DNA of 64,000 bases from Takakia lepidozioides (Eukaryota > Plantae > Bryophyta), in NCBI GenBank assembly GCA_030704615.1, contig CM060731.1, positions 48,298,001 to 48,362,000 of the forward strand, in the 5' to 3' direction. The stretch's first letter is position 1. Each line of letters starts with the position of its first letter. Positions 12,136-64,000 of the stretch are shown in pieces. The notes under the pieces are model-generated. The model worked only from the letters and a program-made list of their open reading frames with translations, made no database searches and was not told the DNA's origin. A program made the translations under genes and the position numbers.

Positions 12136-12914
12136 TTGAGGACTATTTGGGGTCTATTGAGGCCGATATCTTGCAGGTATTGGGGCTTGCTTTGAGGACT
12201 ATTTGGGGTCTATTGAGGCCAATATCTTGCAAGCTTGTGGAGCCTGCTTGGGGCTGTTTGAAGGACTATGTGGGGTCCTTTGAGGCCAATGTTTGGCAGG
12301 CCTGTGGAGCCTTGTGAGGGCTGGTTGGAGGATGATTGGAGGTCCTTGGATGCCCATATTGGGCAGGCTTATGGAGTTTTCTAAGAGCTCTTTGGGGGAC
12401 TATTGGAGGTCATTGGAGGCCAATACTTAGCAGATTTGAGGAGCTTCTTAAGGGCTGTTGGAGGACTGTTGGAGGTCCTTGGAGGCCAATACTTGGTAGA
12501 TTTGAGGAGTTTTTTAAGGGTTGTTGGAGGACTGTTGGAGGTCCTTGGAGGCCAATACTTGGCAGGCTTGTGGAGCCATTGTGAGGGCTGGTTGGAGATC
12601 TTGGAGGCCACTAATTGGCGGGCGCCTAGGGGCTTTTGGTGGACTGTTTAGAGTCCATGTTTGCGAACTTCTTGAACCTCGGTGGGTCTATGTTATGGGC
12701 TAATTGAGGGCAGATTTCAGAAGTTCATGGCAATAATTTGTGGGCTCTTGAGAGTTATTTGAGAGGTTCTTTAAAGATAGTCTTATCTATTGCTTGAGCA
12801 AGAGTGAGTGTGAAGATAGGGGGAGTAATGGGATGAGAGCATTCTGGGCTTAGAGATTGCTTTAGCTTTCTTTCTTTATAGTCTTCCAACATTCTTGTAG
12901 GCCAAAGCTTTTCC
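12136..12914 (+). mobile_element. 5'-truncated LTR of a Ty3/Gypsy-type element with internal ~57-60 bp tandem repeats
   Basis: Highly similar to 45360-46193; followed by a leader and a gag relic. Confidence 0.8.
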
Positions 12915-15832: not shown

Positions 15833-16912
15833 TGCAGGACGGCACTGAAGCCTGATGGACAGTTTCTGGCAGCCATGTTTGGAGGCGAAACTGTGAGGTT
15901 GGACCTTTTCTCTTGATTTTTTCCACTGCCAGTTGCACTGCAATTTGAAAAGGGTGTGCACGCTCATGCAAGAGTGTTCAATTTGTGTTGTAGAGGGAAA
16001 ATCTTGCGCACATCTAGTAGATGTATTTGGATATGAGACTAGTCTTCCATGTTGCCCTTATTGAGACTGCTTCTGTCTCTTTTTCTAGGGGGTTTTCAGG
16101 GAACTGAGAATAGCATGCACAGTGGCACAGGTGGAGCGTGAAGGTGGTGTGAGTCCTCGCATCTCGCCTCTGGCTCAGGTGAGTCTCTTCATTTTGGTGT
16201 AGGAATGAGGACACACACACATAAGCTAATAGGGGAGAGAAACAAGGGGTTGGCAATGGGTTATATGCAAGTGACAATTGTCAAAAGTATGTTCATTGTG
16301 GGTGATGAACAGGTACGAGTTGCACTGCCTGCAGTTGATGTGGACGAGTACACTTTGCGATATCCCAGTGTTGTGATACCTAGTAACGCTAATTGATTTG
16401 GATTGTTGGAGAAGCAAGCCATTTGTTATGTCTTGCATTATACAAACTACCTACATACAGCACAGACCGTCATTCTGCTTTGGAATATCTGTGCTTCAGT
16501 ATTTGTGTGCTGCCAGACATAGGCATCCTGGAACAAAGTTAAAAACAGTAATGTAGAGTATCAGCGGAATTAGGGAAGTGAGACAGCGATAGCGATGTAT
16601 ACAATATTTATAGAATTGTACTCATGGTATGTTCCCAGTCAAGGTGTAATGTCCATGCAGCTTGGTGGTATGAAGTGTGTTACCCCATTGTTGATCTATT
16701 ACTACCGTTGTCCTGCCGGTCACACTGTAAGGCATGCCTGGAGGGTAAAGACTGTGCTGGATGAGAGAAATTATGTCTTTGTCAGGGTTTTACCAGTCTT
16801 AGGGCCTTTGCATAACAACGTCGGAGCCTGTATTGACTTATGTGCAGCAATTGAGTTGATTAAGCACTTGCGGGCCATGGGGGAAGTCAACGCTGCTCGT
16901 CAGAGGAGTTTG
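15833..16912 (+). pseudogene. NDUFAF5: Captured 4-exon fragment of NDUFAF5-like mitochondrial methyltransferase gene
   Basis: Exons 15833-15897 (CRTALKPDGQFLAAMFGGETV), 16100-16178 ([26 protein letters not shown]), 16313-16370 (VR/VALPAVDVDEYTLRYPS) and 16848-16912 (IELIKHLRAMGEVNAARQRSL), colinear and with introns. Confidence 0.88.
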
Positions 16913-40563: not shown

Positions 40564-42597
40564 TGTTAAATTAGTAATGCAAGCATTAGTGTACCATTGA
40601 TTATTCAGCCCTCAGGTTTAATGTCTTCACTATATTCTCGCGGGTAGCAGTAGATATGCCAGTTGGTTAGCAGTTAATCCACCACCATAGTAGGTAGGAT
40701 AGACTTCATTAGTTGGTAGTTAATTACTTCTGCAATTACTTTCTACAGCTCATGAGTCCATGATATAAGGGCCTGAGGTTCACTATGCAACTATTCTAGC
40801 CTTCGATCCTCATGTAGTTGGTACACTGCTCATTCTACATGGTATCAGAACTCGGGGGGCAATAGAATCATAGTTTCTAAGTTCAGGGTTTGAGGTCACT
40901 AGGAAGCACCTCTGGTGTGAAGCACTGTTCCACCATCGTTGGATGTCTTGTTGATTTGATTTTGTGATCCTTTGAGCTCTGCTTTAGAACTGTTGTTTTA
41001 TTGCAAAATTCTTGTTCCAAAATTCTTTCCACTCTAGAAACTTCTCAAGGGCCTGTAGTTCTCATGCACCTCTCAATTCGTGTCTATGAACGTCATCTTT
41101 CTTCCACTCACTACTTTGTAAAAACAGATTTCTCTCGAGATCCCTCTTCCTCTCTCTTGCCATCGTCCTTTAGTTATTTATTGATTTAATTATTTTCTTT
41201 CTAACCTCCTTCAGCAGCCGTCATGGGAAATGGATCAGACTTGATCATCCCTCAGCAAGACAAGCTGACAGGGAAAAACAACTACTCAGTATGGAAGTTC
41301 AAGGTCACAAACTATCTGCTGAGGGAGGATATTCTTGAGCTTGTCCAGAAGAAGGTGGTCCTAGAAGCAGGTCAGGATAAGGAAGAGCTTAGAAAGAAGA
41401 AGCTCAGGGCTCTTACCATTATAAATCTCTCTCTCAGTGGATGACTCATCTCACAGAGCCAAAGGCTGTGTGGGATGCTTTGGCCAAAACGTACGATGAC
41501 AGGTCATCATCGAGGCAAATGGCTGTGAGGAACAAGTTTCATGGACTTAAAATGGAAGAAGGATCTTCCATGGAGGAATTCCTTGAGACCATTACTAATC
41601 TTGTGGCTCAACTTGCTGCCTTTGGTGAAGAAATTGAGGAATATATCATTGTTGAGCACATTTTGAATGCCTTACCTGACACGTATACTGCCTACGGTGA
41701 CGCAATCATGGCGCAGAAAGAGCTTCCTAGTGTTGCAGAACTAACTTCGAAACTGTTGCACGAGGAAACCAGACGGGAATTGAAGGGACGAAAGGCAAGA
41801 TGAAGCCTTGTGGGTCAAGTTTGAACGCTTCAGTAAGGCCTATCAACGCCAAGGACAAGGTGGAGGTCGACCTTCATCACAAAGATCTTCTATTATCACC
41901 ACCTGCAACCGATGCGGCAAGGAGGTTTATTGGACGAAGAATTGTCCGGTTCCGTACGAAGAGATTTTGAAGAACCGTAATCAGCATGCCAACATGGTTG
42001 AAGATGCACCTGACGAATCTGACGAAGACGACTGCATTGGGGCAGCTGAAATGCTGGAAGTAGCCATGGCCGCTCTCGACATGCAAAGAGATCTCACTGC
42101 CGGGGAAAAGAAAGCTTCCTGGATTATCGACTCCGGTGCTAGTAAGCACGTGACCGGCAACTCAGAAATTCTTCATGATCTGGAGGGTTGTAGCAGCACT
42201 TCTAGTGTGCGATCCGCTGGTGGCACCTACCACAATGTGGAGGGAAAAAGCCATACCAATGTATTACAAAATGGATCAATAAAGCTCATTACTGACGTTT
42301 TGTACGTCCCTGGCATGACGAGGAATTTATTATCTGTTGGTGCTTTGGCTGATAAAGGACATCTTGGAATCTTTGATGCCACGAAATGCTTGTTTATAGA
42401 GAAAGAAAGACCTCACAGAGTAGTTCTTCATGGAGAACAAATTAAATCTACTGGATTGTACAACCTAAAGTCATCTGATCAAACTTTATTTGAGGCCAAT
42501 AGCTGAATGGAATCTGACGAGATTATTCGACTGTGGCATAGGAGGCTTGGTCATCTTAATTATCGCAGTCTCCATTATCTGAGCAACAGTGGCAAAG
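40564..42597 (+). mobile_element. Ty1/Copia 5' remnant (LTR, PBS, gag, protease, pre-integrase)
   Basis: LTR TG..CA 40564-40839; PBS TGGTATCAGA at 40840 (tRNA-iMet); gag KLTGKNNYSVWK, CNRCGKEVYWTKNC, protease WIIDSGASKH, LWHRRLGHLN. Confidence 0.93.
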
Positions 42598-43530
42598 TCG
42601 ACCGCTATGTTGGCGGTCGCTTCAATTTATTGTTTTAAAAAAACAAGATTGGCGGTCGCCTAATTCAAAAAAGAAAACAAGCGACTGACGTATTGGCGGT
42701 CGCACGATAGCAAATACATTTTTGAAAATTAACAAAATGAACGTGACCGCCAATTATGGCGGTCGCTTTGTTTTTCGAAATTAAAAAAAGAAATAGCGAC
42801 CGACGTATTGGCGATCACTTCAATTTATTTTTTTTAAAAGCGAGATTGGCGGTCGCACTGGCGGTCGCTTTATTTTTCGAAATAAAAAAAGAAATAGCGA
42901 CCGCCATATTGGCGATCGCTTCAAATTTATTTTTAAAAAAAACAAGTTTGGCGGTCGCTTTATTTTTCGAATTAAAAAAAGAAATAGCGACCGCTATCTT
43001 CAATTTATTGTTTTAAAAAAACAAGATTGGCGGTCGTCTAATTTAAAAAAGAAAACAAGCGACTGCCGTATTGGCGGTCGCACAATTTTGTAAATATGTA
43101 CAGACAAGCGACGACCATATGGCGGTCGGATAATTTCAAAAATATATAAAAAAAACAGCGACCGCCATTGGGCGGTCGCTTAATTTAAAAAATATATAGA
43201 AAAACAAACGACCGCCATAAAATATAAAGATTGAAAGCGACCGCCTTACTGGCGGTCGCGTTTTTTTCAAAATATTAAAAATAAAAGCGACCACCATATT
43301 GGCGGTTGCTTTATTTTAAATATATTAACAAATGAAGCGACCGCCATACCGGCAGTCGCATTATATTTTGAAATAAAAAACAATAGCGACTGCCATACGG
43401 GCGGTCGCTTCAATTTAAAAATATAGTGACCACAATATTGCACAAAATGAAAGGAAATAAAAGCAACCACAGTAGTGGTGGTCGCTTGTTTTTCATAAAA
43501 AATAAAAATATGGACCGTAGTATTAGCGGT
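42598..43530. repeat. Array of palindromic GCGACCGCC-N3/5-GGCGGTCGC motifs in AT-rich spacers (CACTA-type subterminal repeats)
   Basis: About 20 full or half palindromes; the same motif occurs at 50604-50980 and 57910-58137. Confidence 0.8.
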
Positions 43531-43929: not shown

Positions 43930-44340
43930 GGTCTGAGGGGAGTGGATATTGGGTGAAGATGAGGGAGAAATTGAGCCCTTGGTATACGACAATCCCGAAC
44001 ACTGTAAGTGCCACTGGTAGTGTTGAGTGCAACCTATGTGGATTAAAGCTTTCTTATTGTAAGGATCGGTTGCTCGCTCACCTCGGCTATAAAGATGTGA
44101 AGAGCGTTGGGTGGGGTTTATGCCCCAAAGCATCTATGCGGGTAAAAACACTTTGCCCAGTGTGAAGGCAATATTTCAATGTCTTTGGATATGGACATGA
44201 CCTCTGAGCAGAACACTCCAGCTTCCCGTCAGGATGCCTCGATTAGTACCCAGGGCGACTCTTGTGGGTGTCCTTGGACAAATGGGTTGTGTCGGAGCAA
44301 CACCTGCTTCAACACCGTTTGATGAGTCAACAAGAGCTCG
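43930..44340 (+). mobile_element. hAT transposase N-terminal BED zinc-finger fragment
   Basis: W.Y....GSVECNLCG..SYCKDRLLAHLGY....CPKAS pattern. Confidence 0.65.
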
Positions 44341-44342
44341 GG

Positions 44343-46200
44343 TGTTAAAGGAGCAAGCGGTGCATGTGTTAGCATGGTTTCAGTTTGTGGGAGTCTTCAA
44401 CTTCAAGCTTAGGAGAGCTATGAATAGAGGCAGACATCTGATTTCTCTTTGGGGCAGAATAGTGTATTTGTAGAGCATGTTTTGAGTTGGGGTTTCAATC
44501 CCAAGCTTGGGAAGAGCATGTCTATGGAAGTGGCAAGTGCAGGGCTGGATTAGGAGCTCTAAGAGGTGCACTATGGCCATAGAAGGAAACACTATGAGTG
44601 CATACGATGGCTAGAAAAGGGTATGCCATAGAAAGCTCAATAGCTTGTTCTATGCTTGTTTCAATAAGTTCTATAGAGAAAGAGAGCTTGTTGTGTGACA
44701 ACTAGCTTGCTCAGGGAGTTAGAGCCACTCTTGGTGGTCTATTGATGCTCAAAAAACCAAGAACAGCACCTCTGGTTGTTCCATAGAAGCCATAGTTTGT
44801 TGCAGCAATCGCAGAGGCAAAGCGGCGCAAACTCTAGCTTGGGAACGCGTGGGAACGCGTGTGAACTCTTTGGGAACTCGTGGGAACATTGCCCCAGGGT
44901 TGGGAGCACCACTATTGTCCTATCGGATGAACTATTGAGCCAGTGGATGAAAATCGGCGCTCCTGGATGAGAATTGGCTGTAGTGGATGAAACTGTGCCA
45001 GCGGATGAACTATCGCGCTATCGGATGAAAAATCGCGGCGACGGATGAAACTGCGTCAGTGGATGAAATCGTGGCAGCGGATGAACTATCGTGCCATCGG
45101 ATGAAAAATCGCGGCAACGGATGAAACTGCGCCAGCGGATGAAATATTGCGCCAGTGGATGAAATATCGCACCGACGGATGAACTATCGCGGCGGATGAA
45201 ATATCGAACCTGCGGATGAGAAATCGCGGTTTTGGATGATTTGGTCAGTGACGGATGAAAAATTGACTGACTGTGGATATTTTTGGAGCCTTAGGGGGGC
45301 TTGTTTGAGAACTATTTGGGGTCTGTTGAGGCCAATATCTAGCAGGTATTGGGGCATGTTTGAGGACTATTTGGGGTCTATTGAGGCCAATATCTAACAG
45401 GTATTGGGGCCTGTTTGAGGACTATTTGGGGTCTATTGAGGCCAATATCTTGCAGGTATTGGGGCCTGCTTTTAGGATTATTAGGGGTCTATTGAGGCCA
45501 ATATCTTGCAGGCTTGTGGAGCCTGCTTGGGGCTGTTTGAAGGACTATGTGGGGTTATTTGAGGCCAATGTTTGGCAGGCTTGTGGAGCCTTGTGAGGGC
45601 TGGTTGGAGGACGATTGGAGGTCCTTGGATGCCCATATTGGGCAGGTTTATGGAGTTTTCTAAGAGCTCTTTGGGGGACTATTGAAGGTCATTGGAGGCC
45701 AATACTTGGCAGATTTGATGAGCTTCTTAAGGGCTGTTGGAGGACTGTTGGAGGTCCTTGGAGGCAAGTACTTGGCAGATTTGAGGAGCTTCTTAAGGGT
45801 TGTTGGAGGACTGTTGGAGGTCCTTGGAGGCCAATACTTGGCAGGCTTGTGGAGCCATTGTGAGGGCTGGTTGGAGACCTTGGAGGCCAGTAATTGGCGG
45901 GTGTCTAGGGGCTTTTGGTGGACTGTTTAGAGTCCAAGTTTGCGAACTTCTTGAACCTCGGTGGGTCTATGTTAGGGGCTGATTGAGGGCAGATTTCAGA
46001 AGTTCATGGCAATAATTTGTGGGCTCTTGAGAGTTATTTGAGAGGTTCTTTAAGGATAGTCTTATCTATTGCTTGAGCAAGAGTGAGTGTGAAGATAGGG
46101 GGAGTAATAGGATGAGAGCATTCTGGGCTTAGAGATTGCTTTAGCTTTATTTCTCTATAGTCTTCCATCATTCTTGTAGGCCAAAGCTTTTCCTGCCGCA
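44343..46200 (+). mobile_element. Full-length ~1.86 kb LTR (same family as 12136-12914), no TSD
   Basis: TG...CA termini with imperfect inverted ends; 3' part matches 12136-12914; left boundary inferred. Confidence 0.65.
44925..45260 (+). repeat. Phased GGATGA(A) array
   Basis: About 18 GGATGA motifs, mostly 18-20 bp apart, with variable CG-rich spacers. Confidence 0.85.
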
Positions 46201-47739: not shown

Positions 47740-50390
47740 GGAGAAGCGATCTGGATGGTCGACGACGCACCATGTTGCTGCTACTACAACACCAAATACA
47801 ACGATCCATCAGACATCCGGTAATGATCATATGCAGATTGATGCTGTCCGATTCAAGCCATTGACGCCACAAGAAAAACAAAGACGGTGCTCGAATGGAT
47901 TATGCCTTTATAGCGGAGAAGATGATTACATGGCATTAAACTGCCCCAACAAGAGAAGATTCAAAGCTCAGGACAGCACTCAAGTGTTCGATACGAGGAG
48001 GTCGGAAAACGAAGATGTCCAGTCACAGTAAGGACCATGCGGCTGAACACCCCAAATTCCTCACCAAAAAAAGATCTATTTCTACCTCCAGATCCTGTAC
48101 CTTGTTTCACAGTTCCAGTAAAGATCAGGATGCAACATCGAGATATCTCCGTAGAAGCACTTTTGGACTCGGGCGCTTCAGCGTGTTTTATTGACAAAGA
48201 CTTTGCGAAACAACACAATTTAACGCTCGTAAGAAAGAAATTTTCGGCCCCTGTTGAAGTCATCGATGGACGACCGTTAGCATCAGGAAATATTGACCAT
48301 GAAACTCGACCCCTTGAAGTGAAGCTTAAAAATCAAGCATCACAGATTGTTTTCAATGTTATGCAGTCTCCAACGAATCCTGTGATCCTTGGACTTCCCT
48401 GGTTTGTACTTCATAATCCTGACATCGACTGGCGATCACGAAATATTTCGGCAAGACAAAAATGCAAAAGTACCAAAGGTATTCAACCCCTGTTTCTTGG
48501 AGCTAGAGCCTTTATGAGAGCTACGAAGAAAGACGCGACATTTGCACTTTATGCGACTCCAATCAAAACCACAACAGACCAAGGTACTTCGACATTACCC
48601 ACTCAATATCAAGATTTCAAGGATGTCTTCGAGAAGAAAAATGCAGACATGTTGCCAGAACATCGACCTTATGATTGTGCAATTGAGTTGCAAAAAGGAG
48701 CTCAACCACCATTCGGCCCAATCTACAATTTATCTCAGACAGAGCTGGATGCTTTGCGCGAATACATTGATGAAAATTTGTCAAAGAATTTCATTCAACA
48801 TTCGAAATCACCCACGGAAGCACCTATCTTATTTGTGAAGAAGAAGGACGGATCGTTACGTATGTGTGTGGACTATCGTGGGCTCAACAAAGTCACTATA
48901 AAAAATCGTTACCCACTACCGTTGATTTCCGGACTCCTCGAACAACTTGGACGAGCAATTTTTTTCACAAAGATCGACTTGAGATGAGCTTACAACCTTG
49001 TACGAATAAAAGAAGGAGACAAATAGAAAATTGTTTTTTGCACAAGGTATGGACATTTCGAATACAGTATTATGCTTTTCAGTCTTACAAATGCTCCAGC
49101 AATTTTTCAACACATGATGAATGATATCTTTCGAGAATTTTTAAATGACTTTGTAGTCATCTATTTGGACGACATTTTGATATTTTCACATAATGAAGAA
49201 GAACATGGTCGCCAGGTACGCCTTCTCCTTGATAAATTGAGGGAAAAAACACTATATGTCAAGTTGAAAAAATGTCTTTTCCACCAATCTGAAGTCGAAT
49301 TTTTGGGCTACATTATTTCCAACAAATGAGTCTTTATGGATCAGAAGAAAATACAAACCATCATCGAGTGGATTAAACCAACTTCGGTCTGAGATGTACA
49401 ATGTTTTCTAGGATTTGCAAATTTCTATAGACTCTTCATCTAGGACTACTCCAAAATTGTTGCACCAATGACACGACTCACAAGGAATGACAAATTTGTA
49501 TGGGACGAGAAGGCTGACCAAACATTTGAGAGGTTGAAGCAGACATTTACAACGGCTCCAATACTGGTACATGCAGACCCATCTAAACCATTCTTTTTTG
49601 AAGCAGATGTATCGAACTTTGTACTTGGCGCGATACTATCTTAATACGGTACAGATGGTCGACTTCACCCTGTTGGTTTTCGTTCTCGCAAATTTTCCAC
49701 TGCGGAGATCAATTATGAAATCCATGATAAAGAACTTCTAGCGATTATCGATGCTTTTGAGGAGTGGCGTCATCTATTGGAGGAAGCTTAACATCAGGTC
49801 ATTGTCTATATCGATCACAAAACCCTCGAGTATTTTATGAGTGCTCGTATTTTGAATCGACGTCAAGCAAGATGGAGTATGTCATTAACAAGGTTTGATT
49901 TTGTTATTACCTACCGTCCCGGACATCTTCAAGGAAAACCAGATGCTCTTTCTCGACAATCGTATCTTTGCGCCAAAGGAAGGGGATGCAGCTTTTGACC
50001 AACAGAAATCCATCATTTTGAAACCAACAAATCTCCAATTGAATATGTTATCCATGTCCACCTATGACGATGCAGAGATCATAAAAGAGATTCAGGAAGC
50101 ACTGAAGAGCGACCAATTTGCTACGACACTACGAAGTCAACTAAATCGACCTCGAGACAACCCGCATGTTACAAACGACTTCGAGTTCAAAAATGACTTA
50201 CTTTATTTCAAATGACTTCTCTATGTACCTCAAGGACCTACACGACTTCGAATTCTTCAAACATGTCATGATCTTCCAGCTGGAGAACATTTCGGCTTCA
50301 ACAAAACAATATAAATTTTATCCAGGGACTATTGGTGGTCGCAGATGTGGAAACTCGTGAAAGAATTTATAAAATCTTGCGACACGTGTG
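47740..50390 (+). mobile_element. Ty3/Gypsy (Tcn1-like chromovirus) gag end plus degenerate pol
   Basis: MQIDA..GLCLY knuckle, protease [32 protein letters not shown], RNase H, integrase zinc finger cut at SCDTC; many stops. Confidence 0.93.
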
Positions 50391-50603
50391 CCCTAATTAT
50401 CATTTCTGACGTGACGTGGCGCTGACACGTCAGCCGTCACGTATGATGTGCGTCACGTCACGTCCAATCCGGACGTTTAACCATGTAATATTTTTTACAT
50501 TTGACTTTTACGATTTACTTCTACCATTTGTAATGACATGGCAGCCATGGTGTAAAACAGACGTGGCTAATTATTAAATATTTATTAATTCTTTTTAAAA
50601 AAT

Positions 50604-50980
50604 GAGTCCGCCTATATTGGCAGTCGCATATAATTTATTGTTTTTAATAAAAACGACCGCCCATATTGGCGGTCGCTTGTAATTTAATATTTTGTTGAAT
50701 TAAGCGACCGCCAGTATTGGCGGTCGCCGGTAATTTATTTATTTTGAAATGAAGCGACCGCCCATATTGGCGGTCGCCCGTAATTTATTTATTTTTAAAT
50801 GAAGCGACCGCCCATATTGGCGGTCGCCCGTAATTTGTTTATTTTTAAATGAAGCGACCGCCCATATTGGCGGTCGCTTGTATTTTATTACATTTTAAAA
50901 TAAGTGACCGCCTACATTGGCCATGTGGCGGTCGCTCTTCTTGTTTTTATAAATATAGCGGCTGCCATGCAGCGGTCGAG
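50604..50980. repeat. Palindromic subterminal repeat array (left end of kinase-carrying element)
   Basis: AAGCGACCGCCCATATTGGCGGTCGC at ~50 bp period. Confidence 0.85.
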
Positions 50981-51275
50981 TGTTTTTTTTTTCCTTAGAA
51001 ATCCAGGGACCCGCCGTGTGGCGTTTTGTTTTTTATTTTTAATCATGAAGCGGCGCCTCGGCCAGCTACGTGGCGAGGTGCCACAGGTCAGGAAAAATTG
51101 AAACAAATGGGATGGGGGGAGGTGGTTTTGAACCCTTGACCTCTCCCATGTGGGTGCGCGCGGCGAGGTGCGACTGGCCCGTCGCGCCGCGCTGACACGT
51201 GGCGAGGTGCCACTGGCCTGTCGCGCCTTTTCAAGCATAATGCCATTTGCTTTTGGGGGGGGGGCTGGTGGCGCC

Positions 51276-51283
51276 TATATAAA
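51276..51283 (+). promoter_or_regulatory. TATA box upstream of the kinase ORF
   Basis: TATATAAA preceded by a G10 run, ~320 bp upstream of ATG 51600. Confidence 0.55.
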
Positions 51284-51599
51284 CCATTTCCCCCTCTTCT
51301 GATCACTTTTGCCCCTCTTGTGGTGCGGTTCCTTGGCATCATGTAGTCCTTTCGGACTTCGTTGCTTGGCACAACCAACGGGAGGTGCAAAGGTGATTAT
51401 TTGGGGGGGAAGGTTTTGTCGGTTTTTTATTGGTCAGTCCCACACACTTGTTCACGGTACAATCATCGTATCACCATTTTGCCGTTTCCGGATCTCCGGC
51501 GGCCTGTTTTTTTGTAGAAAACTACGAAGACACCATCCATATTCGTTCATTGCCATTTTTATGAGGTTTTGGATCCTGTAGTGGGCAAAGGTTTATACA

Positions 51600-53062
51600 A
51601 TGTCGGGGGTTGTGAATTCAAGTTCTGGGGCGGGATCGGCTGGGGGGCGAAGGAAGAGAAAACGTGCCCACGAGCGAGATAGCCAGGTCAACAAGTTAGA
51701 CTACCCGGGACCGGATGCCTTGGATAGGGTGAAAGAAGTGGTAGTGGATTATTTCAAGGGTAGGGACATGATGAGGTTGGAGAGTGCTTATGTTAGGCAT
51801 GGATGGGAGGGGTTTCAGATTTTTCAGCAAAATATGGAGAAGAAAATGACAAACGCTTTGGCGGGGGCTAAGTGGACGGCGGACATGGACAAGCTGAAGT
51901 TCAATCGGTGGATCCAAAGCAGGGCGAAAGACGCCACGTGGAATTTGAGGCAACAAATGAAGACATGGAAGGGTAGAACAAGTGAAGGTTGAGTGCCCTC
52001 CGCCGAAGCTGAGTTAATGCGGCGTGTTGAGTATTGGGCTTGCTTGACAAGTCAGAAGTCACATCGCTGGACTAGGGTTGTCCCTTGGAAGGCGGGGTCA
52101 TCAGGCAGAGGAGGCACAACTGGTCTTTATTACTTGAATTCTACTGCGAAGGTGGTAGAGATTGGCCCTTACAAAGAAAGAGGGTATGCTAAGGTCCACC
52201 ACTGTAGGATTGTTGGCGATTCTAGAATACCGGAGAGTTGGGAGCTCGCGGGAAAAAAACCCAAGTCCAAAAATCCAGAAAAGGCGTTGAGACAACATAA
52301 CGACGAGTGTTTGGCAGTGAAGTTCCAGTATCCGGGTGTTATCTCGTATTTTGCTGTGAATGCACGTGAGGTAGAGGGTTACACTCACTGGTGGAATGGG
52401 GGGACAATACGCGACATGATGAACCTTGACAGAAAATGGGGCAACGATTCGGACAACATGGTGATTTTGGAACAAATGGGAACGGAAGCAGAGTTCCAGG
52501 AATGCGATCGCTTGCTTCATTTCCGGAAAGTGCGTAGTAAACTTGCATGGGCATTGGTGTGCATCATGGATGTTGTCCACAATAACGGTGTCATGCACAA
52601 CGACTTGTCCTCCGACAACATCTTGTTGCATTTTCCAGATGGCACCGAAGAGATCAAGATTGGGGTGTGTGATTGGGGCTTAGCCACCCCATTGGGCATA
52701 CGCAAAGCCTCGCCATACCAGTTTGAAAACCAAGACAAGCTGGACCGGGAACTCGCGAAAAGATGGTGGGTGGAAAAAGATATTGCATCGGTTTTCAATG
52801 CGAATGCCACGCCCCCCCCTCCCAGGACATGACATCAGAGGCCTTTGTCGTTGGAAAGATAGTGATACGAATAAATGGCGGCGCTCATTATGATCTAAGT
52901 ATGTTCCATGACCAATTTACAGGAGGTTGTTGGCATTCAATGCTACAAAGGTTGTACGACAACAACAAGAATGAGAGAGTCACATTAGCCCATGTAGTAC
53001 TTTGGTTCATGGGCAAGCCATTCAATTGGCCTGAGCCGAAAGACGTATATAGGACGGAGTAG
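51600..53062 (+). pseudogene. Intronless atypical protein kinase (one in-frame TGA, one frameshift)
   Basis: NLS-like RRKRKR; ERGYAKV loop, LAGKK, catalytic loop MHNDLSSDNILL, DWG motif. TGA 51990-51992 is in frame with both flanking ORFs; frameshift in the C-run at ~52812-52823. Confidence 0.85.
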
Positions 53063-53145
53063 ATCATAGTCTCGTAGATATGAGATTTATGGCGGTACAA
53101 TGGTTCTTTTATGAAGACATAACTCAATTTTGATCATGCATGTAA

Positions 53146-53677
53146 TAAATAAAGTCCCATTGTAAATACTACATTGCATATGCTTGACCCTGACACATGT
53201 CATCGCAACATAAATGGTTTGTGTACTGGCTCACTGTTTATATTTATAATGTTCCAAGGTTTCGGATAGGGTTATGAGAAAACGATGTATTAGTCCCGTA
53301 GGAGTTAGACAACAAACCTCTCATCTCATTCAACTGTGCGACACTACCATGAGAGGCATGGATCGGAAAATAATAGGTGCACATGCGACCTCCGTACGTT
53401 TGATACTAGGTCTCTACTTAAACGTGCGGAGGTCGCATGTACACCTATTATTTTTTTATCCATGTCACTCATGGTAGTATCGCACAGTTGAATGAGATAT
53501 TGAACGTTTGTTGTCTAACTTATATGGATCCAATATATCATTTTCTCATTACCCTGTCAGAAACATTGAAACATTCGCAGTTACAAACAGTGCCACAATA
53601 CACGGCCGGTTTTGTTGAAATGATATTTGTGAGGTTCGAGCGCATGCAATTTATTATTTACAACGGAATTTTATTTA
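53146..53677. repeat. Long fold-back hairpin 1 (~255 bp arms, ~18 nt loop)
   Basis: e.g. ATCTCATTCAACTGTGCGA/TCGCACAGTTGAATGAGAT and CATGCGACCTCCG/CGGAGGTCGCATG; loop 53402-53419. Confidence 0.92.
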
Positions 53678-53745
53678 CTTGGGGGACCGGTACTGATGTT
53701 GGAGCGCAACTGATGGTACGAGTTCTCTATTGATTAGAGCTGTCA

Positions 53746-54123
53746 CAACCAATGTCAACAATCATATTTACGGTAAGGTGTTTAATGTTATTGTTGTTCT
53801 TCTAGCTGAATTCTGTAGTACTATTTTTGCTATTCCCATGCCAACGTCCTCTGAGACTGTCATGTTCAAACAGACGTATCAGCCACCCCGGCCAGCTTGC
53901 AGGCTACAGCCATGGCCCACCATAAATTGAATGAATTGGAGATTTTGTGCGAAGTTCCTGGTTTCATGTCCGTGGTGGCTGATACAGAATTCGGAATATG
54001 GCAGTCGCAGTGGACCTGATGTTGTTGGCATGGGAGTAGCAAAACGATTCATAAATAATTCTGCTACATGAACATTGGCAGTATGAAATACCTTGCAGTA
54101 CATATGATTCTTGAGATTGTTTG
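53746..54123. repeat. Long fold-back hairpin 2
   Basis: GTATCAGCCACC 53876-53887 / GGTGGCTGATAC 53974-53985; TCCCATGCCAAC/GTTGGCATGGGA; opposite-strand ORFs 53730+ and 54229- translate to similar peptides. Confidence 0.88.
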
Positions 54124-54403
54124 CACGGATTAGTTGTGTTTGTGCTTTCAAGTGGCGAACATTTCTGCCATGGTGCGGAAGACGTGCATTAAACGGTTGA
54201 TGTGATACTACAAATGTATCACATCGCATTTGTGAAAATGTATCACATGAACCGTTCCATGTGACATACGGGAGTTTTCGATAGGTACGAGATCAATGTG
54301 GCCTACGAGATCTGCTTCCACCAACAAACATGTGATCATTTCAGAAGCGCTAGAACTTTGAAGCGACGATGGGCAAGGTTCTTCATCCAGATGTTCAACA
54401 TGC

Positions 54404-54707
54404 TGAGGTCTTCTATAATGTCTCTTGCTTCGTAATGAGGTGCTTCTCCAACTCTTATTTTTTCAATGCTAATATCTTTCATCTGGAACATATCCACACA
54501 TGCGTATATAACTTAAAAAAACAAATGACCATCAAAACTGGAAGCTGGGAATGAGGCTTATAAAAGTTGAGATGGTCATTTGTTATTTTAATGATTTCTG
54601 CACACATATGTGGATATGTTCAAGGTGGAGAATATTAACATATTGGATAAAGTGGACATGGAGAAGCACTGCATTACGAGGCCGGAGACACTACAAAAAG
54701 AGCTTCA
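54404..54707. repeat. Long fold-back hairpin 3
   Basis: GTGCTTCTCCA/TGGAGAAGCAC, GAACATATCCACA/TGTGGATATGTTC, AACAAATGACCATC/GATGGTCATTTGTT; loop ~54541-54565. Confidence 0.9.
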
Positions 54708-54708
54708 A

Positions 54709-55551
54709 ATGGCATACCATGTAACAGGAGGATCGGATGCCCATAGGTTTTTAATACAATCGACACCACCTCCCATTGGATAGGCTACCATACACATTTC
54801 TGAATTGTGTGCATTGGGCAAGAACTTGGTATGAAATGCAGACAAAGAGATGCATGGCATACATGCCGGAAACCTGGCATACATAAAAGATCCCCAGTAT
54901 TTATGGGTCACATCTGATTGGGAGATAACCATACGTGCGGGAGATATTCGAGATTGGTGGGAGAGAGAGCAGTTTTGCCACAATCTGGGAGGGCATTGGA
55001 GTCAAAGAAGGTCCAGGTTTATCCGGCTCCCACAGGTTCAATGGGTGCCGGAGGAGAAAGAATTGTATGACCGACAACCGATTGGGAGATATTTGTTGTT
55101 GTCCGAACTGGAAGATGCTATAATATGTCAACGCCGAATGAATGATGCGTACGAGGTGGCTTATCGTCGAAACGACACAATGGTTATGGACAGGGCCCGC
55201 GAGAGGCAGTTGGAAAGTATCAAAAGTACCATCAAGGCAGTTGTAGAGAAATGGAGGCGATTATGGACATACCGTTATCATCGTGTTTCGGGGGCTGAAT
55301 TGCCGGATGTGGACGGTCTCGTTGCCGATTTGCATGCAGCTCGAGCACTTATTCTCGATCCACCTCCGCCACGTCGTGAGAGTGAAGAAGAAAGTCAACT
55401 TTCACCGCGAAGTAGGCGGATGCAGGCCAGAATTAATCACATGTCATTGGGCCCCTCATTGACCACGAGATCACGGTCGCAAGCTCTGGCAATTGGCAGT
55501 GCAAATCAGGCCACAACATCAAATTCCACATCCTCGGACAGTGACGACTAG
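54709..55551 (+). pseudogene. Orphan ORF (~280 codons; 233 aa still open from 54850)
   Basis: ATG 54709 is in frame with ORF 54850-55551 across a TAG and a TGA; protein-like composition with a Ser/Asp tail; no family recognised. Confidence 0.55.
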
Positions 55552-56000
55552 GCTTTTAATGACTGGCAGCGTAAAACATATACAATATGCATTTTTGTTG
55601 TACCTTGAATATTGTTGGAAAACACAGTGATGGCATTCCGCCAAATTTGTATATCACCACTTTTGTTAATACACAATGCACATGTGCAGCACCTACCAAT
55701 TTCAATTGCATGAGCAGTGTTTTTTTCACATTTACACTCGTGTGATGGGGAAGAAGTAGTTCACCCTGTAAACAAATTTACAATGGTGTCATATTTGGTC
55801 ATGACGTGTATATGGGTATTTGCAATGAACTCCGAAAGCTGGAGAACAAGGAACATTGATGTTATCAAATAAGTTATAACGAGTTACGAACGGTCATCTT
55901 CCAAACAAATTTCGCCTGGTCCCTGCGTATTTTATAATCATTTCGCAAAATCTATGATCTTTTTACGAACATACCCACAAAGTTCTCAAAGCACAAAATA

Positions 56001-56360
56001 ATTTCGATTGATCTCATATTACACTGGGACGTATCAGATGGTACATTGAACACACTGGCCAAGTTTCAAAGCGAACGAAAATCATTTGGATGGGCAACCA
56101 TCCGTTGGGCCATTGAACGAATTTCTATTGAACTCCTATTACTGTGGGGCCTCTTACATGGCACATTGAATATAGTGGCTAAGTCTCAAAGCGCACCAAA
56201 ATCATTTCGATGGGCAACCATCCGTTGAGCCATCGAATGAATTTCGATTGATCTGATATTAGTCCGGGACCTGATACATGGTATGTTGAACATAGTGGCA
56301 AAGATTGAAAGCAAACGAAAATCATTTGGATGGGCAACCATTCAATCGCCCATTGAATGA
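56001..56360. repeat. 120 bp tandem repeat x3
   Basis: Units begin ATTTC.ATTGA at 56001, 56121 and 56241; all contain ATCATTT.GATGGGCAACCA. Confidence 0.92.
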
Positions 56361-56375
56361 GGGTTTCGTCTTCGA

Positions 56376-57515
56376 TTACACGCTTGATGCGATGCGGAGA
56401 TTGTTATACCTTTGCATGTTCGTATAAATGCTATCTACGCTACGGTTTGACATGCGTGCGACACGTTGCAAGCCTGACAGTGCCCGCTTTACCCGTGCTT
56501 CTCTGGAGGCCAAATGGGTCGTTCATTGTACCCAATTCTCCCAATCGCCATTCAATGGGACCCATGCCTGAATCTCCAGCGTTTTGGACAAGCGCCATAC
56601 AGTTGCCATGACAATGTCCTGCTCCTTTGTAACGCGGTCGACATCTAATATCGGGTTCATCTCCGATTGAATGGCGACCCTCGATTATTCCCCGGTTTCC
56701 AGTACTGGTTCTTTTCTTTTTCTCCTTCTCTCATCCGCAATTCGCTGTTCCTCAACCATGGTTTCATCGGCCATAGGGTCAAGGACGTCCGTAACTTCCT
56801 GAATGATGAGGTCAATACTGCGATCGGGCATCGCAAACTCCGCGTCCATGTCCACGACGTTTGTTCGATCCTCATTGTGGACAACAGTGCCTTCATTGTT
56901 TGGAGGTATGTCTTGCAATCTAGCTTCCAACTCGGCTATGCGCAGTGTTTGTCAGTCTAGTCGGTCCTGCAGGGTCCTGATTCGCTGGTCTCTTTCTGCC
57001 AGTTGTTCCTCTAACGTTGCAGCCGGTTGTATTTCGAACGTGTCCGGGATGTACTCCAAATCGTATAGCAACCTTGCATTCCTCCTACTAGCAGTTTGCC
57101 AATTCACTGGACGCAAGAGTATGACCTCCAAGTACAACATGGTTGCCAAGGTATACGGGATTTGACCCTTTAAGAGAGGTGACCCCACAATGTGCAATGC
57201 ACCTCATTCGCCCTATGCTGGAAATGCAAGTTCGTGCAAGACCTGGACTCTACGTAATTGTTTCGGGTTTGCACGTCATGCCTATCCAAAGGCCACAATC
57301 GATTGATGTGATACCATTTTAGGATTTTTTGCATCTCGCCATCCGCCATCAGAATTCTTCTGGAACGTCCTCCCAGCCCTCTTCTCCTAGTATGCTAGGG
57401 TCACCAAATACTTCCCAATTCAAGTCTTGTCTTTACCTTTGATTTTCTTAGGGGGCGGTCCATGTTCATTGGGGTCATCTTTTCCATAACGGTCATCGTC
57501 CTGGCCCTCTGCCAT
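56376..57515 (-). pseudogene. Degenerate coiled-coil ORF of transposon-cargo type
   Basis: ORFs 56952-57197 and 56685-56930 are in the same frame across a stop; LYLEVILLRPVNW, coiled coil, RRRKRK; further stops and frameshifts upstream. Confidence 0.55.
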
Positions 57516-57909
57516 TCTACAACAATCGGAGCAACACTAAACGAGGTTTTCTAAAAGACGTAACTCTAAACCCTTCCCTCGTTAAGTAGGTTTGAGTAGG
57601 TGTCAAAATAGTTCTTAAAAGCTAATTTTGTAGAATAAAATGATCCTGGAAGCCAGAGAGGGCCTATGGGAGCATTCTGCAACGACCTCACAGAAATCGC
57701 GGCAAAAAATACCCCCCATCCAACCAATGGCCTCCTTCTCCACGTGACTACGTGTCGGGGATAATTAAATGTCACGCATACATAAGTTGTGTGGAGAAGT
57801 GAGGGGAGAATAAGCCTCTCTTGGCGTATATCCCCCCCCCCATCCCCCCCCCCCCCCCCCCCCCCCCCCCTCTTCTCGGGCCACGTACGGGGCGAATATT
57901 CTAGAAGAA

Positions 57910-58137
57910 CGACCGCCAACTTGGCGGTCGCTCGATTTTTCGGAAAATAAAAAAATAAACGACCGCCAGAACTGGCGGTCGCTCCATTTTCTGGAAAGAA
58001 AAAAAATAAGCGACCGCCAACATAGGCGGTCGCTCATTTAAAAAAAATTTAAAAAATAAGCGACCGCCAACATAGACGGTCGCTTCATTTTCAAAAACTT
58101 AAAAAAAAATAAGTGACTGCCAACATAGGTGGTCGCT
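57910..58137. repeat. Palindromic subterminal repeat array (right end of kinase-carrying element)
   Basis: Five CGACCGCCAAC..GGCGGTCGC units at ~50 bp period. Confidence 0.85.
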
Positions 58138-58480
58138 TCATTTTCATTTTCATCCAGTCCCGTCGACTGTACAATGGATTCGACACAATCGTTTGTATAA
58201 ACATGGTTGCGTACGTCAATCGGTCCTGGCAGTACATCACCCCTAAGCTCCATTGGGGCACTACCGGTGGCTTCAGCGTGTAGTGGGAGGTGAGGGTCGA
58301 CCCCAACTTCATTTTGAGGACCATGTTCTAGGGATAACACAATTGCAGCTTCACCTTCATCTGCGATACGTCTTCAAGAAGGTCATTAAAGGTCGGCTGG
58401 ATATAAGCATCTTCCTCTGTGAATGTAAACGGGTCATACGCATTTTCGAGAGCATCATCGGATCCATCTTCACTATCGGA

Positions 58481-58620
58481 GAACGCAATTGAAGTAGTTA
58501 CTCATTTGTTCACAACAAGATTTGCAACAGGTTGAATCCCGCGAGGGCTGACAAATTGGTGTATGTGTATACCAATTGCCGACTGCTACGTGAGAGGACA
58601 GCGGATGATGCTGCAGCATG
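58481..58620 (+). mobile_element. hAT transposase C-terminal dimerisation fragment
   Basis: ERN*SSYSFVHNKICNRLNPARADKLVYVYTNCRLL. Confidence 0.85.
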
Positions 58621-61600
58621 GTATGAGAGGAATTTGCATTCCGAAGAATCTGCTTCTGAGGCTGATTCGATGAGTGATGATACTGAGCCTCAGAGATAAT
58701 CATCTGAGAGGGAATCATCTCGCTGGCACATGGAACCAAATGAAGTCCCAATGCCAACAAAATACAAATATAAATGTCTTAATTAGCTAGAAATAACTAT
58801 TTCTAACTAATCACAAACAAAACCATGACACCTCTTTGCAACCCCCTTGTATTCTCTTTGATCATAGCTACCATCTTAACTTGGAGTTAATCAACTCTCT
58901 ATGAAATCAATGTGCCCCAATCAACTGCCGCCGTCGAAATCTAATGAATCAAGACATGATCGATGAAATTTAATGAAAAAGGGTGCCGAATTTTAGAAAA
59001 ATCGGATGAAGCTTGGATGAAAAAGTTAAAATTGCCATTAAGCCTGCCGAACCTAGCATAATTCCGGGGGGGTTTAATGATTCCGGCAGGGGTCTGACGA
59101 AATAGAGCGACCTCTACGGTATACATAATGACGTGGCACATCAGACGTCATGTTCAGACACTCCATTTGGTTTAAGTCATGTCTTAACTAGGCTTGATTG
59201 AATTTGGGCCGCATCTGTGGCTTCCACTAGCTAAGGGTTTGTAAAATGCAGAAATATCCATCGTTGTTCTTAAAAACAAGTATGATCAGCTATTATATTG
59301 TTCCAATCTCATTGTCCATTTGTTGTATTGTTACTAGATCAGCAAGAATTCCATACGTTCTTAGGCAGTTTTAAAATTTGGGCCCTGTCTTGTCTTCATT
59401 GAGTTTTTTCTTCATCCAGCTTTAAGGTCTAATTCAGAGCGGGCGCTTCAGCTCTGAATAGAAAGGTGATTATTGTATTGTGACCCTACATCCAATGAAG
59501 CAAAAAAATGACAATTTAAGTACAATGACAAAAACATAGTCACTAGGGAGTGTTTATTTTTTTGTTTACTTTAGACATATCAAAAGATTGGACAGAGATT
59601 GCCCCATACTCAAAATCAGTGAATCCATTTGGTTGAGTCCATTCATGTGAAGACAATAAATTGGTCATAGAGAGCAATGTACAAATAAAAGAGCAATGAA
59701 TCAAATATCAGAAGAATAAAAGTCAAATAGAATTAGGATCCAAATTAACCACCAAGTATGAAAAAATTAAAGAGTAAAAAAGGACATCGATCAATGATAG
59801 CCGAGTACAAAGTTTTGTTCTGCATATTATCAACACAACAAAGCGAAATTAACTATTGAAGATAATCAGAAAATGATCATTTGAACTACCGGAGTCTGAA
59901 CAAATTCAATGAATGAATTCATTGAAACGAGGGAGATGAAGCGTGTATGTACATGTACGTGTCTGTGGATGTGAAAAATTTAGACATTTTGGAGATTTGA
60001 TTTTTTTTTATAAGAGAACCCACTGGTAGCTGAGCCTCTGCTCATCTCTTCTCATAAAATATTAGATGGACCAATGCACTGCCATCAACCTCTCATTGAA
60101 GAAGCATACAGACCTCGTTGTAGCGCAAGGTTGGTTGATGTATGCAGTAGTCTCTCTTGAAGTCACACAACATCCTTCTCAATGTGACACATCCCACTTT
60201 TGAACCAAGTGGTCGCTCAAATTTCAATATATGCCAAATACCATATCTGTAATCAATTTCATGTATGTTCATGCAAGATTGGGTGTTGGGAAGAACATAT
60301 GTGTGTCCCATCTTTGGAGATAGAGTCGGAGATGAGGACGATCCAGCGACAGTCATGTGAGTTGAGACACCTATATTGCATGTTGAGCTCGATCCATCCT
60401 TAGAACAACCTGTGGGCACTGATGGATCAAAGGCAAATGCAAAAGGACTAGCAGTTCCACCTCGTGGACGGCCTCCAATGTCACGCTATACGAGCACATC
60501 GTCTGCTCCATTTCCTAACTCAATAGGCAAGAAAAAAAAAATAGCAGCCAGGGTGTAGCATTGAAGAGCACAGATCCTTGCCACGACCTCCTACATTGGA
60601 GTCCGAGTGACGGGCCTTGATGTCCTCCACGGACGGAGGAGGCCAGGGGGGAGGCGCTCCTACAATATTGGTGGGAGGAGGCCAGTAGGAGACAATCATC
60701 CCAAAATAATCCTATCAAAAGTTTTTGCATTAAAATGACTGACAATAGTGTTTGTCATCGTGGATAATGTCCACTTGCAAAATTTTCAAAGAGTAAAACA
60801 AAAAAAATTCAAGAATGTCAGCTTGAAAAAAGATATAATAACGGTGTGTGACTCGTAGAAGTTGCAAATGATCGCATGTCATTTTTATAGCAAGAAACTT
60901 GAGTCTTCGAATTGTTGTTAAATAGAGCATAATTCAAATCCCATGAGTTAAGATGCAGATGACAAAATCCAAAACGTTAAGACCTCTCACTTCGAAGAAC
61001 AACACTTCGAACAGACTAGTAGATATGACTGTGAAGAACACTGCTCTAACAACAACTTTTGTGGGAACATCGACCTCAATTGGCTGTCGATTTGCGTCTC
61101 TTAGGAGCAGTTGTGATGAGATATTGGGACTCTTAACGCTTGACCTGCCCACTGGGTTTTTAATGTTTGTATTTCTATGCCTGAGCTGCGAGGTTACCGA
61201 CCGACTCCATCGGAGAAGTGACAAGTCCCCAACAAACAACACAAAAGGCTCACAAGCAGGTAAAACTTTATTCTTATATTTATAATCAGTATTCCTTGCT
61301 TTGTTTTGAGTTTTCTAATCAAGTTGCACTCTATAGTTTTTTTTACAACTTAACCCATTGAATTCTAGGATTCATTGAAAGGGTGCGTGTGCACAATTGG
61401 AACGACAAGACTTTATTTGAAACACTGACAAATGCTTTATATTATGGCAAATGTTATGTTATGTTAAGGCAAATGTTATGGAATATGTGGTTAACATGGT
61501 AAGTATGGCCATGTAGCCACATGGAGTAAGTGTTAGGATTGCGAGCAAAGAGTCCCATTTGCAACAGAAAGACGTTGTAGATAGCCCCTAATGGTTCTCT

Positions 61601-61929
61601 GCCAACTTTATGCTGTGGGGACGTCGGATGTCACAAACCCCCTTTAGCCGTTGAAGTGCGATGAATTCAACATCAAACCAAAAAGAGATCTAATTGCTCT
61701 ATTTACTTACACAAAGAAATCCAGGACAAAGCTTAATTTACTAATTCACAGTCTATCCGACAATCAACTCATGAGTATGATGAATGAGACTACAACAAAG
61801 AGGATTGAGATATTGCTCTCACTAAACAACACGTTGACAAAAGGCTTGCTAGCAAGATTTTTTTTGATGAGGAAGTTCTTAATGATCCGAATAAACCCTG
61901 TGGACACAAAGGAGCGTCACCTCAACTTG

Positions 61930-62285
61930 CTCTTGAGTCTCTCTCCAAGGGGAAAACTCCAAGAATAGATGGTTTTCCTACCAAAGTTTTTCTTGACTTA
62001 TGGAATAGTGTTGGCTCAAGTTTGCTAGCTCTTTTTACTAGACTTTGGGGTATTGTATATATGCCTCAGTACAATAATATCTTTTTTAGTTCCAAAAAGA
62101 TGAGATTAAAGCTCGTCTCAAGAATTGGAGGCCGATTACATTACTAAGCACAATGGACACAAGAATCTTGCAAAAACTCTTGTCATTCGACTATAGTCTG
62201 TACTCCTCTATTTGGTTAGACCTAATCAAACGAGCTTTGTGAAAGATCGAGGTCTACTCGACAATGTTATTGTATGGGCATTATA
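61930..62285 (+). mobile_element. LINE (L1-like) reverse transcriptase fragment
   Basis: KGKTPRIDGFP, NWRPITLLS, ILAKTLVIRL, PNQTSFVKDR..DNV. Confidence 0.85.
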
Positions 62286-62949
62286 GGACATCTCAACGAA
62301 TCCCGAGCCATTCCAATGAGGAGACTCCGTCAATTTAATCTGGCTTTGGTGATGAGAGGATACAAAATGCCTTGGCTTCACTATAGGAGAACGTGGTTTT
62401 TATGACTACAAATATGACTGCCCCACAGTCATGAAAAAGTATATATGATTGTAGGGCCCATATATACTCATGCAGAGAGACCCTGTAACTTTTTTTGCTA
62501 TAGATGGTCATAGTCATAAGCGCCATACAATCACATGTATCAAATCATATCCTTAACTGTTATTGATCATCAGATTGAATTTGTTACAAAATTGTGATGT
62601 GGGTTGAACAGAACTTATAACATTCAATGATGCGGAGGATGATTTTGTGGACGTCATGAGTTCTGGTGAAAGTAAAACAGGGTCATTTAAAGAGCCCTTT
62701 TGTGTATCAAGAATTATGGACACATGGCTGCTCCAAAGCTTCTGAAGCTTTTTGTGAGGAGAGTGTGAATGACTAGTTTAGTGAATTGTTGCTACCTACA
62801 GCTCAAATGAAGAGCCTCTCTATGCATGTACATCTGGCCTTATGTTCTACTTTAGCGGTTGATCAATGAATGCATCATATGATGCAAGTTGGAAGGGAAG
62901 TTAAAAATTCCGAATCCCTGTGACGATCTACTATCGAAGGTAATCCGCC

Positions 62950-64000
62950 TTAGCAGCGCTGGGCAAAAGGGCCGGGTGTCCCAGTCCAACCGTCCACGCA
63001 TTTGAGAAGAGGACCCACAAGCTTGCCTTGGGAGATGGCATTGTACACCTTCTCAATCTCTTGACCAGGAGACACAGTCCTCAAGCCTGATAGCAACTGG
63101 GTCCCTAATTCTGACCTCACAAATCTGTAGAGAGGGTATGTCCTGCAGTCTTCAATCCGGTTTGGCACTGCCGAATACCCCTTGTTATCGTACGACTCCC
63201 GGACCAAAGGTACAGCAATGTTCAGGCGCGTCTTCAACTCCTCTTCAAAGATTGCAATCCTGTGGAACACTGATGTAGTCTCCGATTTTTCATTCTTGGG
63301 GTTTTGGAGCGCATGACTCACCAAGACTTCCCTTAGTTTCTGCATCAGGGGGTAAGTTTCACTGCTGGCATCATCGATGTAGCTGAATACAGGCTGGCGA
63401 TCCACCAGGCTGAGAAGGTCCTTCTCGCAGAACCGTGATGGCAAAAGTGCGCCGTTACTGCCTGTGAAGAGCGTCTTCTTGGCGACGTGGGAAACAATTT
63501 GCCTCACTGTCGTCTGCATCGTCTCCTCGATGTGGCGAAGGTCCACGGCCTGGCAGAGGCCCACCAAGAAAGTGGAGCTCATAAGCTTCAGAATCTCAAT
63601 AGATTCCTCGGTCTTTCTTGCAGACACTAAACCCAGCGAGTTGACATCCTGGTTGTGCTGCTCAGCACTTTGCACGTGGGTGGTCACTGGGTTGGCTAAG
63701 TAGTTCAACTCCGAGAGGTATGAAGCCATGGCGATCTCCCCGCCCTTCATTCCGTAGTCCAGACTTGGGTTAGGTCCTCCACTGAGGTTTGAAGGAAGCC
63801 CATTGTTGTAGTAGTCGTTTACCAGCTCAGAGAACTGTGCAAACATGAGCTTCCCAATCGCAGCAACGGCCAACCGCATGTTGTCCATGGAGACTCCAAT
63901 GGGGGTTCCTTGGAAATTCCCGCCATGCAGGGCCCTGTCCCCGGCAGCATCAATGATTGGGTTGTCGTTGACAGAGTTGATTTCTCTTTGAATGGCATGT
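62950..64000 (-). CDS. PAL: PAL copy 3, 3' half (5' end beyond window), frame intact
   Basis: Open frame from the window edge ([14 protein letters not shown]) to stop; lacks both deletions of copy 2. Confidence 0.97.

Follow-up and report, generated by a model that had tools for sequence, protein, structure and literature searches.

Transposons of the hAT superfamily are usually single-gene elements with short terminal inverted repeats (TIRs), often (C/T)AGGG..., and an 8-bp target-site duplication (TSD). Some cut-and-paste transposons of fungi, from several superfamilies, stably carry genes for a TET/JBP dioxygenase and an alpha-kinase in conserved gene order; TET/JBP is found in some hAT lineages, and IS3EU elements have the alpha-kinase as well (PMC12730594). 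The V chromosome of the moss Ceratodon purpureus is enriched in Lanisha, a cut-and-paste transposon of EnSpm-like type (PMC8245031; Repbase report cited in PMC12730594). Here we analyse a 64,000-nucleotide stretch of Takakia lepidozioides (assembly GCA_030704615.1, contig CM060731.1, positions 48,298,001 to 48,362,000; hereafter the window, numbered from its first letter). A unit starting at 50391 had been proposed, from the sequence alone, to be a symmetric, transposase-less, CACTA-like element with an atypical kinase, a hairpin array and orphan genes. We find that the region is very probably part of a large hAT-superfamily DNA transposon with several genes, now decayed and rearranged, a reading that rests on directly observed homologies, lesions and co-linkage of the same genes in other genomes. 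The family is a hAT lineage with a kinase and a RING-type gene beside the transposase, a cargo that is unusual for hAT elements.

Results

Remnants of a hAT transposase adjoin two of the palindrome arrays

The window was compared with loci of C. purpureus and with moss-type ENA, metagenome and assembly contigs, coded L006-L139. Two pieces of a hAT transposase were found, each next to an array of palindromes (aa, amino acids):

42598-43530, array3: about nine full palindromes and 28 half-sites, oriented as array2 and longer than the other two arrays
43956-44165 (+), N-terminal zinc-finger remnant of the hAT transposase, aa 7-70 of the L017 protein, behind array3
50608-50950 (+), array1: five perfect and two to three degenerate palindromes at 50-bp spacing
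57908-58146 (-), array2: four to five palindromes spaced 50-53 bp apart, in the opposite orientation to array1
58412-58699 (+), C-terminal remnant (dimerisation region) of the hAT transposase, aa about 600-691 of the L017 protein, directly outside array2

L017 is an intact relative of 17,136 bp with genes for a kinase (+), an N-domain protein (-), a RING protein of 1039 aa (+) and a transposase of 966 aa (-); the genes adjoin arrays of the same GGCGGTCG core as in the window. Its transposase contains DUF659 (E = 3e-37) and Dimer_Tnp_hAT (PF05699, E = 7e-10). In tblastn, this protein matched 58481-58687(+) with 51% identity over 69 aa (E = 1e-12, aa 626-691) and 43974-44153(+) with 39% identity over 64 aa (E = 8e-7). 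A TGA at 58490-58492 in the C-terminal remnant replaces the Trp of CERNWS in the L017 sequence. The unit had been called transposase-less, which holds insofar as only about 95 transposase codons are left beside array2, but the C-terminal remnant abuts that array just outside the end that had been assigned to the element. Array3 and the transposase N-terminus represent a second fragment of the family, lying 7 kb upstream among truncated Copia and Gypsy pieces.

The original prediction had placed the unit in a CACTA-like family, as a transposase-less member whose accessory module would depend for mobilisation on an autonomous partner, itself not seen, that shares the subterminal motif. Subterminal repeat arrays are indeed typical of CACTA elements, the unit has no long transposase open reading frame (ORF), and a Tnp2-like ORF, weak in its match (E = 0.0065), occurs in the window at 20543-21586. 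However, CACTA/TAGTG termini are present at neither end of the unit, the palindrome motif is nowhere near the Tnp2-like ORF, and no Tnp2-type ORF lies within 42.5-59.5 kb. The arrays are instead accompanied by remnants of a hAT gene in the window itself and, in L017, by a complete hAT transposase, and they front every gene rather than the ends alone. We therefore regard a CACTA-like origin as highly improbable and assign the element-associated transposase to hAT.

The same genes are linked in other genomes

In C. purpureus (L010) and in ENA contigs L013-L017, the kinase has in its vicinity a RING-H2 finger ORF of 1000-1039 aa, and the kinase recurs with the N-domain gene, the RING gene or both in L010, L011, L012, L013-17 and L139; L138 contains the kinase alone. 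The view that the genes form a dedicated accessory module of a DNA transposon, and are not captured host fragments, was borne out by their co-occurrence at independent loci (L017, L013-15, L010, L011, L012 and L139) and by a kinase that is multi-copy with its catalytic residues kept. The components of the unit had also been expected to co-occur in other copies. At the moss loci, this is the case for the kinase, RING and N-domain genes, but not for the hairpins, which have no consistent counterpart there.

Intact relatives comprise a DUF659-type hAT transposase, the kinase and one or two genes with a novel N-terminal domain, one of them ending in a RING-H2 finger. As the intact relatives encode a hAT transposase, they are expected to move by cut-and-paste. 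In L017, a perfect 10-bp inverted repeat (AAGCAGGGTT at 442-451 and AACCCTGCTT at 16195-16204, 15.76 kb apart) flanks the four-gene element and supplies candidate hAT termini, with GGACGTCC clusters 16 bp inside the repeat on both sides; no 8-bp TSD is visible around these candidate ends.

The kinase is a pseudogene of a multi-copy, transposon-linked family

The first gene of the unit is:

51600-53062 (+), kinase pseudogene whose full length of about 490 codons is colinear with the intact family (about 492 aa)

It is read in three colinear pieces (51600-51989, 51993-52829 and 52763-53059). The kinase gene is not intact: it is interrupted by a TGA at 51990-51992, where its closest relative P0001 has Arg, and by a frameshift in a C-run near 52800-52810. 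Characteristic motifs are nevertheless kept, namely the N-terminal basic cluster GRRKRKRAH, the Lys in AGK, HNDLSSDN and DWG. Pfam matched Pkinase with E = 1.7e-7 and 31.4 bits against a cut-off of 31.7.

Ceratodon and moss-type metagenome or assembly contigs are the source of nearly all of the 243 family proteins recovered by a profile search. A single cluster has 126 members at 90% identity, and its representative, P0051, comes from Ceratodon, where it lies on the V chromosome. In an alignment of 32 family sequences (down to 26% identity), the beta3 Lys K210 and the alphaC Glu E229 are invariant, and HND..DN (325-332) and DWG (350-352) nearly so. AlphaFold modelled a helical N-terminal domain followed by a bilobal protein-kinase fold (pLDDT 85), which superimposed on many kinases with TM scores of 0.6-0.65 at 12-14% identity. 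By its residues and its model, the family protein is a catalytically complete kinase of divergent eukaryotic protein kinase (ePK) fold, and its conserved N-terminal basic cluster suggests a nuclear location. The ratio of nonsynonymous to synonymous substitution rates (dN/dS) was 0.28 for L017 versus L011, the one usable pair, synonymous sites being saturated in most pairs; four intact ORFs persist despite this saturation.

The ORFs could in principle be ordinary host-gene fragments between repeats, brought together by Pack-type capture or left from a decayed host-gene cluster. The surroundings, a patchwork of truncated transposable elements and duplicated phenylalanine/aromatic ammonia-lyase (PAL) genes, would suit such an origin, as would a Pfam score merely at the family cut-off. 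Against it, the kinase is full length and colinear with a multi-copy family linked to transposable elements in several genomes, its matches to solved kinases are marginal (E about 0.004), and its neighbours are the same genes as at other loci. Descent from the host in this manner thus seems very unlikely, and the kinase is not the decayed copy of a single-copy host gene that would have spoken against an accessory module; the transposon reading is retained.

Separately, at L139:9506-10990, on a 531-kb assembly contig, a kinase copy with four in-frame stops adjoins an N-domain gene. Decayed copies of the family thus exist in that genome too.

Two supposed orphan genes are halves of one RING-family gene

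Downstream of the hairpins, three features follow:

54710-55551 (+), C-terminal, post-RING part of a RING-family gene, containing the 233-aa ORF at 54850-55551
56000-56341, 2.8 copies of a 120-bp tandem repeat (80% identity), which separate the two parts of the RING-family gene
56500-57524 (-), N-terminal domain and coiled-coil part of the RING-family gene, with ATG at 57524, decayed

The 233-aa ORF and the coiled-coil ORF had been described as orphan genes. With moss RING proteins as queries, tblastn placed aa 27-201 at 57432-56910(-) and aa 746-967 at 54710-55260(+), so that the two ORFs are the N- and C-terminal pieces of a single RING-family gene. For the 233-aa ORF, a word search and the Atlas were blank and Pfam gave no assignment; its identity was reached via moss loci that had been found through the kinase. 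The minus-strand gene is also broken, with at least three frameshifts within its first 130 codons and several in-frame stops further on. No RING motif (C3H2C3) occurs in any of the six frames of the window element, whereas the relatives possess a RING-H2 finger (zf-RING_2 in L010, E = 1.7e-7; the same domains in L017).

The two parts of the RING gene share one strand in Ceratodon L011, where the gene converges on the kinase. Given this arrangement, the opposite-strand pieces in the window probably arose by local inversion or because partial copies were fused, and the central part of the gene was lost.

A domain of ~140 aa in which certain W, C, H and K positions are invariant forms the N-terminus of both the RING protein and the second accessory protein (L017:5250-5732(-), L017:8362-8796(+), L010, L011, L012 and L139). 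It was modelled with moderate confidence (pLDDT 79.5, six sequences). Foldseek gave no match at E <= 0.001, the best VIA-align hit in the PDB had Z = 2.7, and Pfam assigned nothing to the N-domain and "unk" genes. The 120-bp satellite does not recur elsewhere in the window, and the moss loci contain no sequence that matches it.

Palindrome arrays as parts of putative promoter modules

The arrays share the core CGACCGCC-N6-GGCGGTCG, a palindrome that can also be written GCGACCGCC-N6-GGCGGTCGC. The core pattern has nine matches in the window, against none expected from shuffled sequence, and the 8-mer CGACCGCC/GGCGGTCG occurs 36 times, exclusively within the three arrays; in L017 it occurs 24 times, in five clusters adjoining gene ends. 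Array1 and array2 are mutually inverted, each with a period of 50-51 bp. A scan of metagenomes for the 18-base palindrome gave single chance matches in other contigs and no arrays. Further sequence elements accompany the arrays:

50391-50607, outer flank of array1, in which TGACGT/ACGTCA motifs cluster from 17 bp inside the Gypsy junction
51040-51283 (+), kinase promoter region, with three CGTGGCGAGGTGCCAC repeats, a G10 run at 51255-51264 and TATATAAA at 51276-51283
57823-57880 (-), promoter of the minus-strand gene, with a long G-run at 57832-57878 and then TATA-like GATATAC; the ATG is at 57524

Between TATATAAA and the kinase ATG at 51600, the leader measures about 320 nt. Near 43630, behind array3 and ahead of the hAT N-terminal remnant, there is a TATA box. 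The window thereby contains three putative promoter modules of like build, which belong to the hAT, the kinase and the RING-type gene, respectively. In intact relatives, each gene stands behind a putative module of its own, in which an array of a short GC-rich palindrome is followed by ACGT motifs, then by a G-run and a TATA box, and finally by a ~300-nt leader. The arrays may promote or enhance transcription, or they may be bound by the transposase or another element-encoded protein.

All parts listed by the original prediction (arrays, G-run with TATA, kinase, three hairpins, 233-aa ORF, 120-bp repeat and coiled-coil ORF) were present where it had placed them or close by. Its symmetric element was upheld for the arrays and promoters, which are mirrored, but not beyond them, as the outward flanks are unrelated to each other. 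Convergence of a kinase unit and a RING-gene unit would account for the mirror-image appearance.

Long hairpins are absent from most moss relatives

Three hairpins lie between the kinase and the 233-aa ORF:

53146-53677, hairpin 1, fold z-score -27 against shuffles
53740-54126, hairpin 2, fold z-score -9.6 against shuffles
54405-54705, hairpin 3, fold z-score -13.5 against shuffles

They are long and imperfect but strong, and have no copies elsewhere in the window. While the hairpins themselves are thus real, their proposed place in the module is not general, since they are absent from most moss relatives. Comparison with the moss loci yielded neither a sequence match nor a consistent structural counterpart, and a search for inverted repeats downstream of six moss kinases found none in four, a 40-nt arm pair in L006 and one long hairpin in L012. 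Rfam matches were far below the gathering threshold and, falling on both strands, reflect structure only.

The L012 hairpin (L012:13833-14644) is near-perfect, with 99-nt arms of 97% complementarity and nested arms, and is located ~2.3 kb downstream of the kinase.

The ends of the copy and the case for a hAT fragment

At 50391, the left junction reads GTGTG followed by CCCTAATTATC. The original prediction held the termini to be uncertain and noted that the sequence here interrupts a Gypsy integrase. The truncated Gypsy sequence, cut at 50390, does not resume downstream, so 50391 is not a clean insertion site; the Copia sequence cut at 42597 does not resume either. The 8-mers of the left junction are not repeated in 58146-62600; no inverted match to 50380-50412 (with at most two mismatches in 12 nt) with matching 8-bp flanks exists in the window; and a search for mirrored flanks gave nothing above chance. 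The TGACGT/ACGTCA cluster of the left flank is the sole such cluster in the window. Because it begins 17 bp from 50391, like the L017 cluster relative to its candidate end, 50391 may lie close to the true left end.

That resemblance to the cluster 16 bp inside the candidate terminus of L017 also speaks for a different reading, in which 50391 to about 58.7-59.3 kb is a complete Ds-like internal-deletion derivative that has kept both termini and can still be mobilised by full-length copies. A transposase cut down to its C-terminus right after array2 is likewise what an internal deletion predicts. Yet 58146-62600 contains neither an inverted match to the left end nor a TSD, and the RING-family gene is internally rearranged. 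The Gypsy element, moreover, is not resumed on the right, and at least one junction must consequently be a deletion or rearrangement. We consider a complete Ds-like derivative unlikely, though less so than a CACTA-like or a host origin.

Several observations weigh against our assignment to a multi-gene hAT transposon. Neither a TIR nor an 8-bp TSD, which the original prediction had proposed to define, was found for the copy, and its mobility class thus rests on the transposase remnants and the relatives. Pfam detects nothing in the short hAT remnants of the window when these are searched alone. The array motif is not universal: the arrays of Ceratodon are built of related GC-rich motifs of the GGCCGTCC type, and L010 lacks the 8-mer. 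Gene order also varies, with RING and kinase genes on the same strand in L017 and L010 and convergent in L011 and the window.

Sequence context

The neighbourhood is a patchwork of truncated elements. A Copia gag/pre-integrase frame (41223-42597; Pol_BBD, E = 3.7e-21) ends exactly at the first palindrome of array3, and no Copia integrase or reverse transcriptase occurs anywhere downstream. Three PAL genes (PF00221, E down to 3.5e-147) are located at 7766-9946(+), 32838-34262(-) and 62950-63888(-). They sit in a large inverted segmental duplication, in which 2634-12135 matches 39489-29893 at 93-98% identity and 8896-10312 matches 64000-62584 at 99.6% identity. A block of ~55-bp tandem repeats with long open frames is present in two copies, at 12136-12914 and 45296-45886, and 12136-12914 matches 45415-46193 at 96% identity; the second copy has the hAT N-terminal remnant on one side and a Gypsy fragment of the minus strand on the other.

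Discussion

The copy is dead, and none of the element's proteins can be encoded from the window. Most likely it has no present activity, except perhaps for small RNAs from the hairpins, their output being the sole activity that is conceivable. It adds just one dead, rearranged example to the family. In intact relatives, the accessory proteins would act in the nucleus, to the benefit of the element. The original prediction had speculated on an anti-silencing or toxin/antidote role of the kinase and the hairpins. Tentatively, and with more doubt than confidence, we suggest a broader possibility: a bryophyte-wide hAT lineage may keep, under selection, a self-contained kit of a nuclear kinase and N-domain/RING proteins, all expressed from element-specific palindrome arrays that a protein of its own binds, which would control expression of the element or modify host factors of chromatin, silencing or repair. 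The hairpins would then be a built-in small-RNA source in this genome's branch.

In the literature available for searching, we found no account of hAT elements that combine kinase and RING genes. If our reading is correct, such a lineage has kept an apparently active kinase, as judged from its residues, and a RING-type gene with the transposase across distant bryophyte-type genomes, each gene with its private promoter motif. The gene models that recur in mosses as an "orphan kinase" or an "orphan RING", among them the 126-member cluster, would then be transposon genes.

Among described systems, the element shares with plant DUF659-type hAT transposons and the wider Ac/Ds group the DUF659 and C-terminal dimerisation domains of its intact relative's transposase, of which the window keeps remnants. 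Internal-deletion or decayed derivatives are common in that superfamily, and short motifs are repeated near the ends, as here. Classical hAT elements, however, encode the transposase only, while the present lineage adds the kinase and one or two N-domain/RING genes; its motif arrays front every gene and are not just subterminal, and the TIRs and TSD of hAT elements were not recovered in this copy.

CACTA/En-Spm elements are similarly large, with arrays of short repeats near their ends and an accessory protein (in CACTA, TnpA binds the repeats). They differ in their CACTA termini and Tnp2/DDE transposase, both missing here, and the accessory genes of the present element encode a kinase and a RING protein. 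Lanisha is likewise a moss DNA transposon associated with the V chromosome, on which the kinase representative P0051 also lies. It was ruled out as the identity of the element, Lanisha being EnSpm-like and the kinase-linked transposase hAT.

The nearest parallel is offered by the fungal TET/JBP elements (PMC12730594), as in both cases enzyme genes stand stably beside a transposase. The two systems belong to different host kingdoms, and the fungal alpha-kinase contrasts with the divergent ePK fold of the moss family. TET/JBP is found only in the fungal elements and RING only in the present one, and palindrome-array promoters were not reported for the former (PMC12730594). If confirmed, the moss lineage would be a plant counterpart of these enzyme-carrying fungal elements and would offer a testable instance of host manipulation by a transposon via protein modification.

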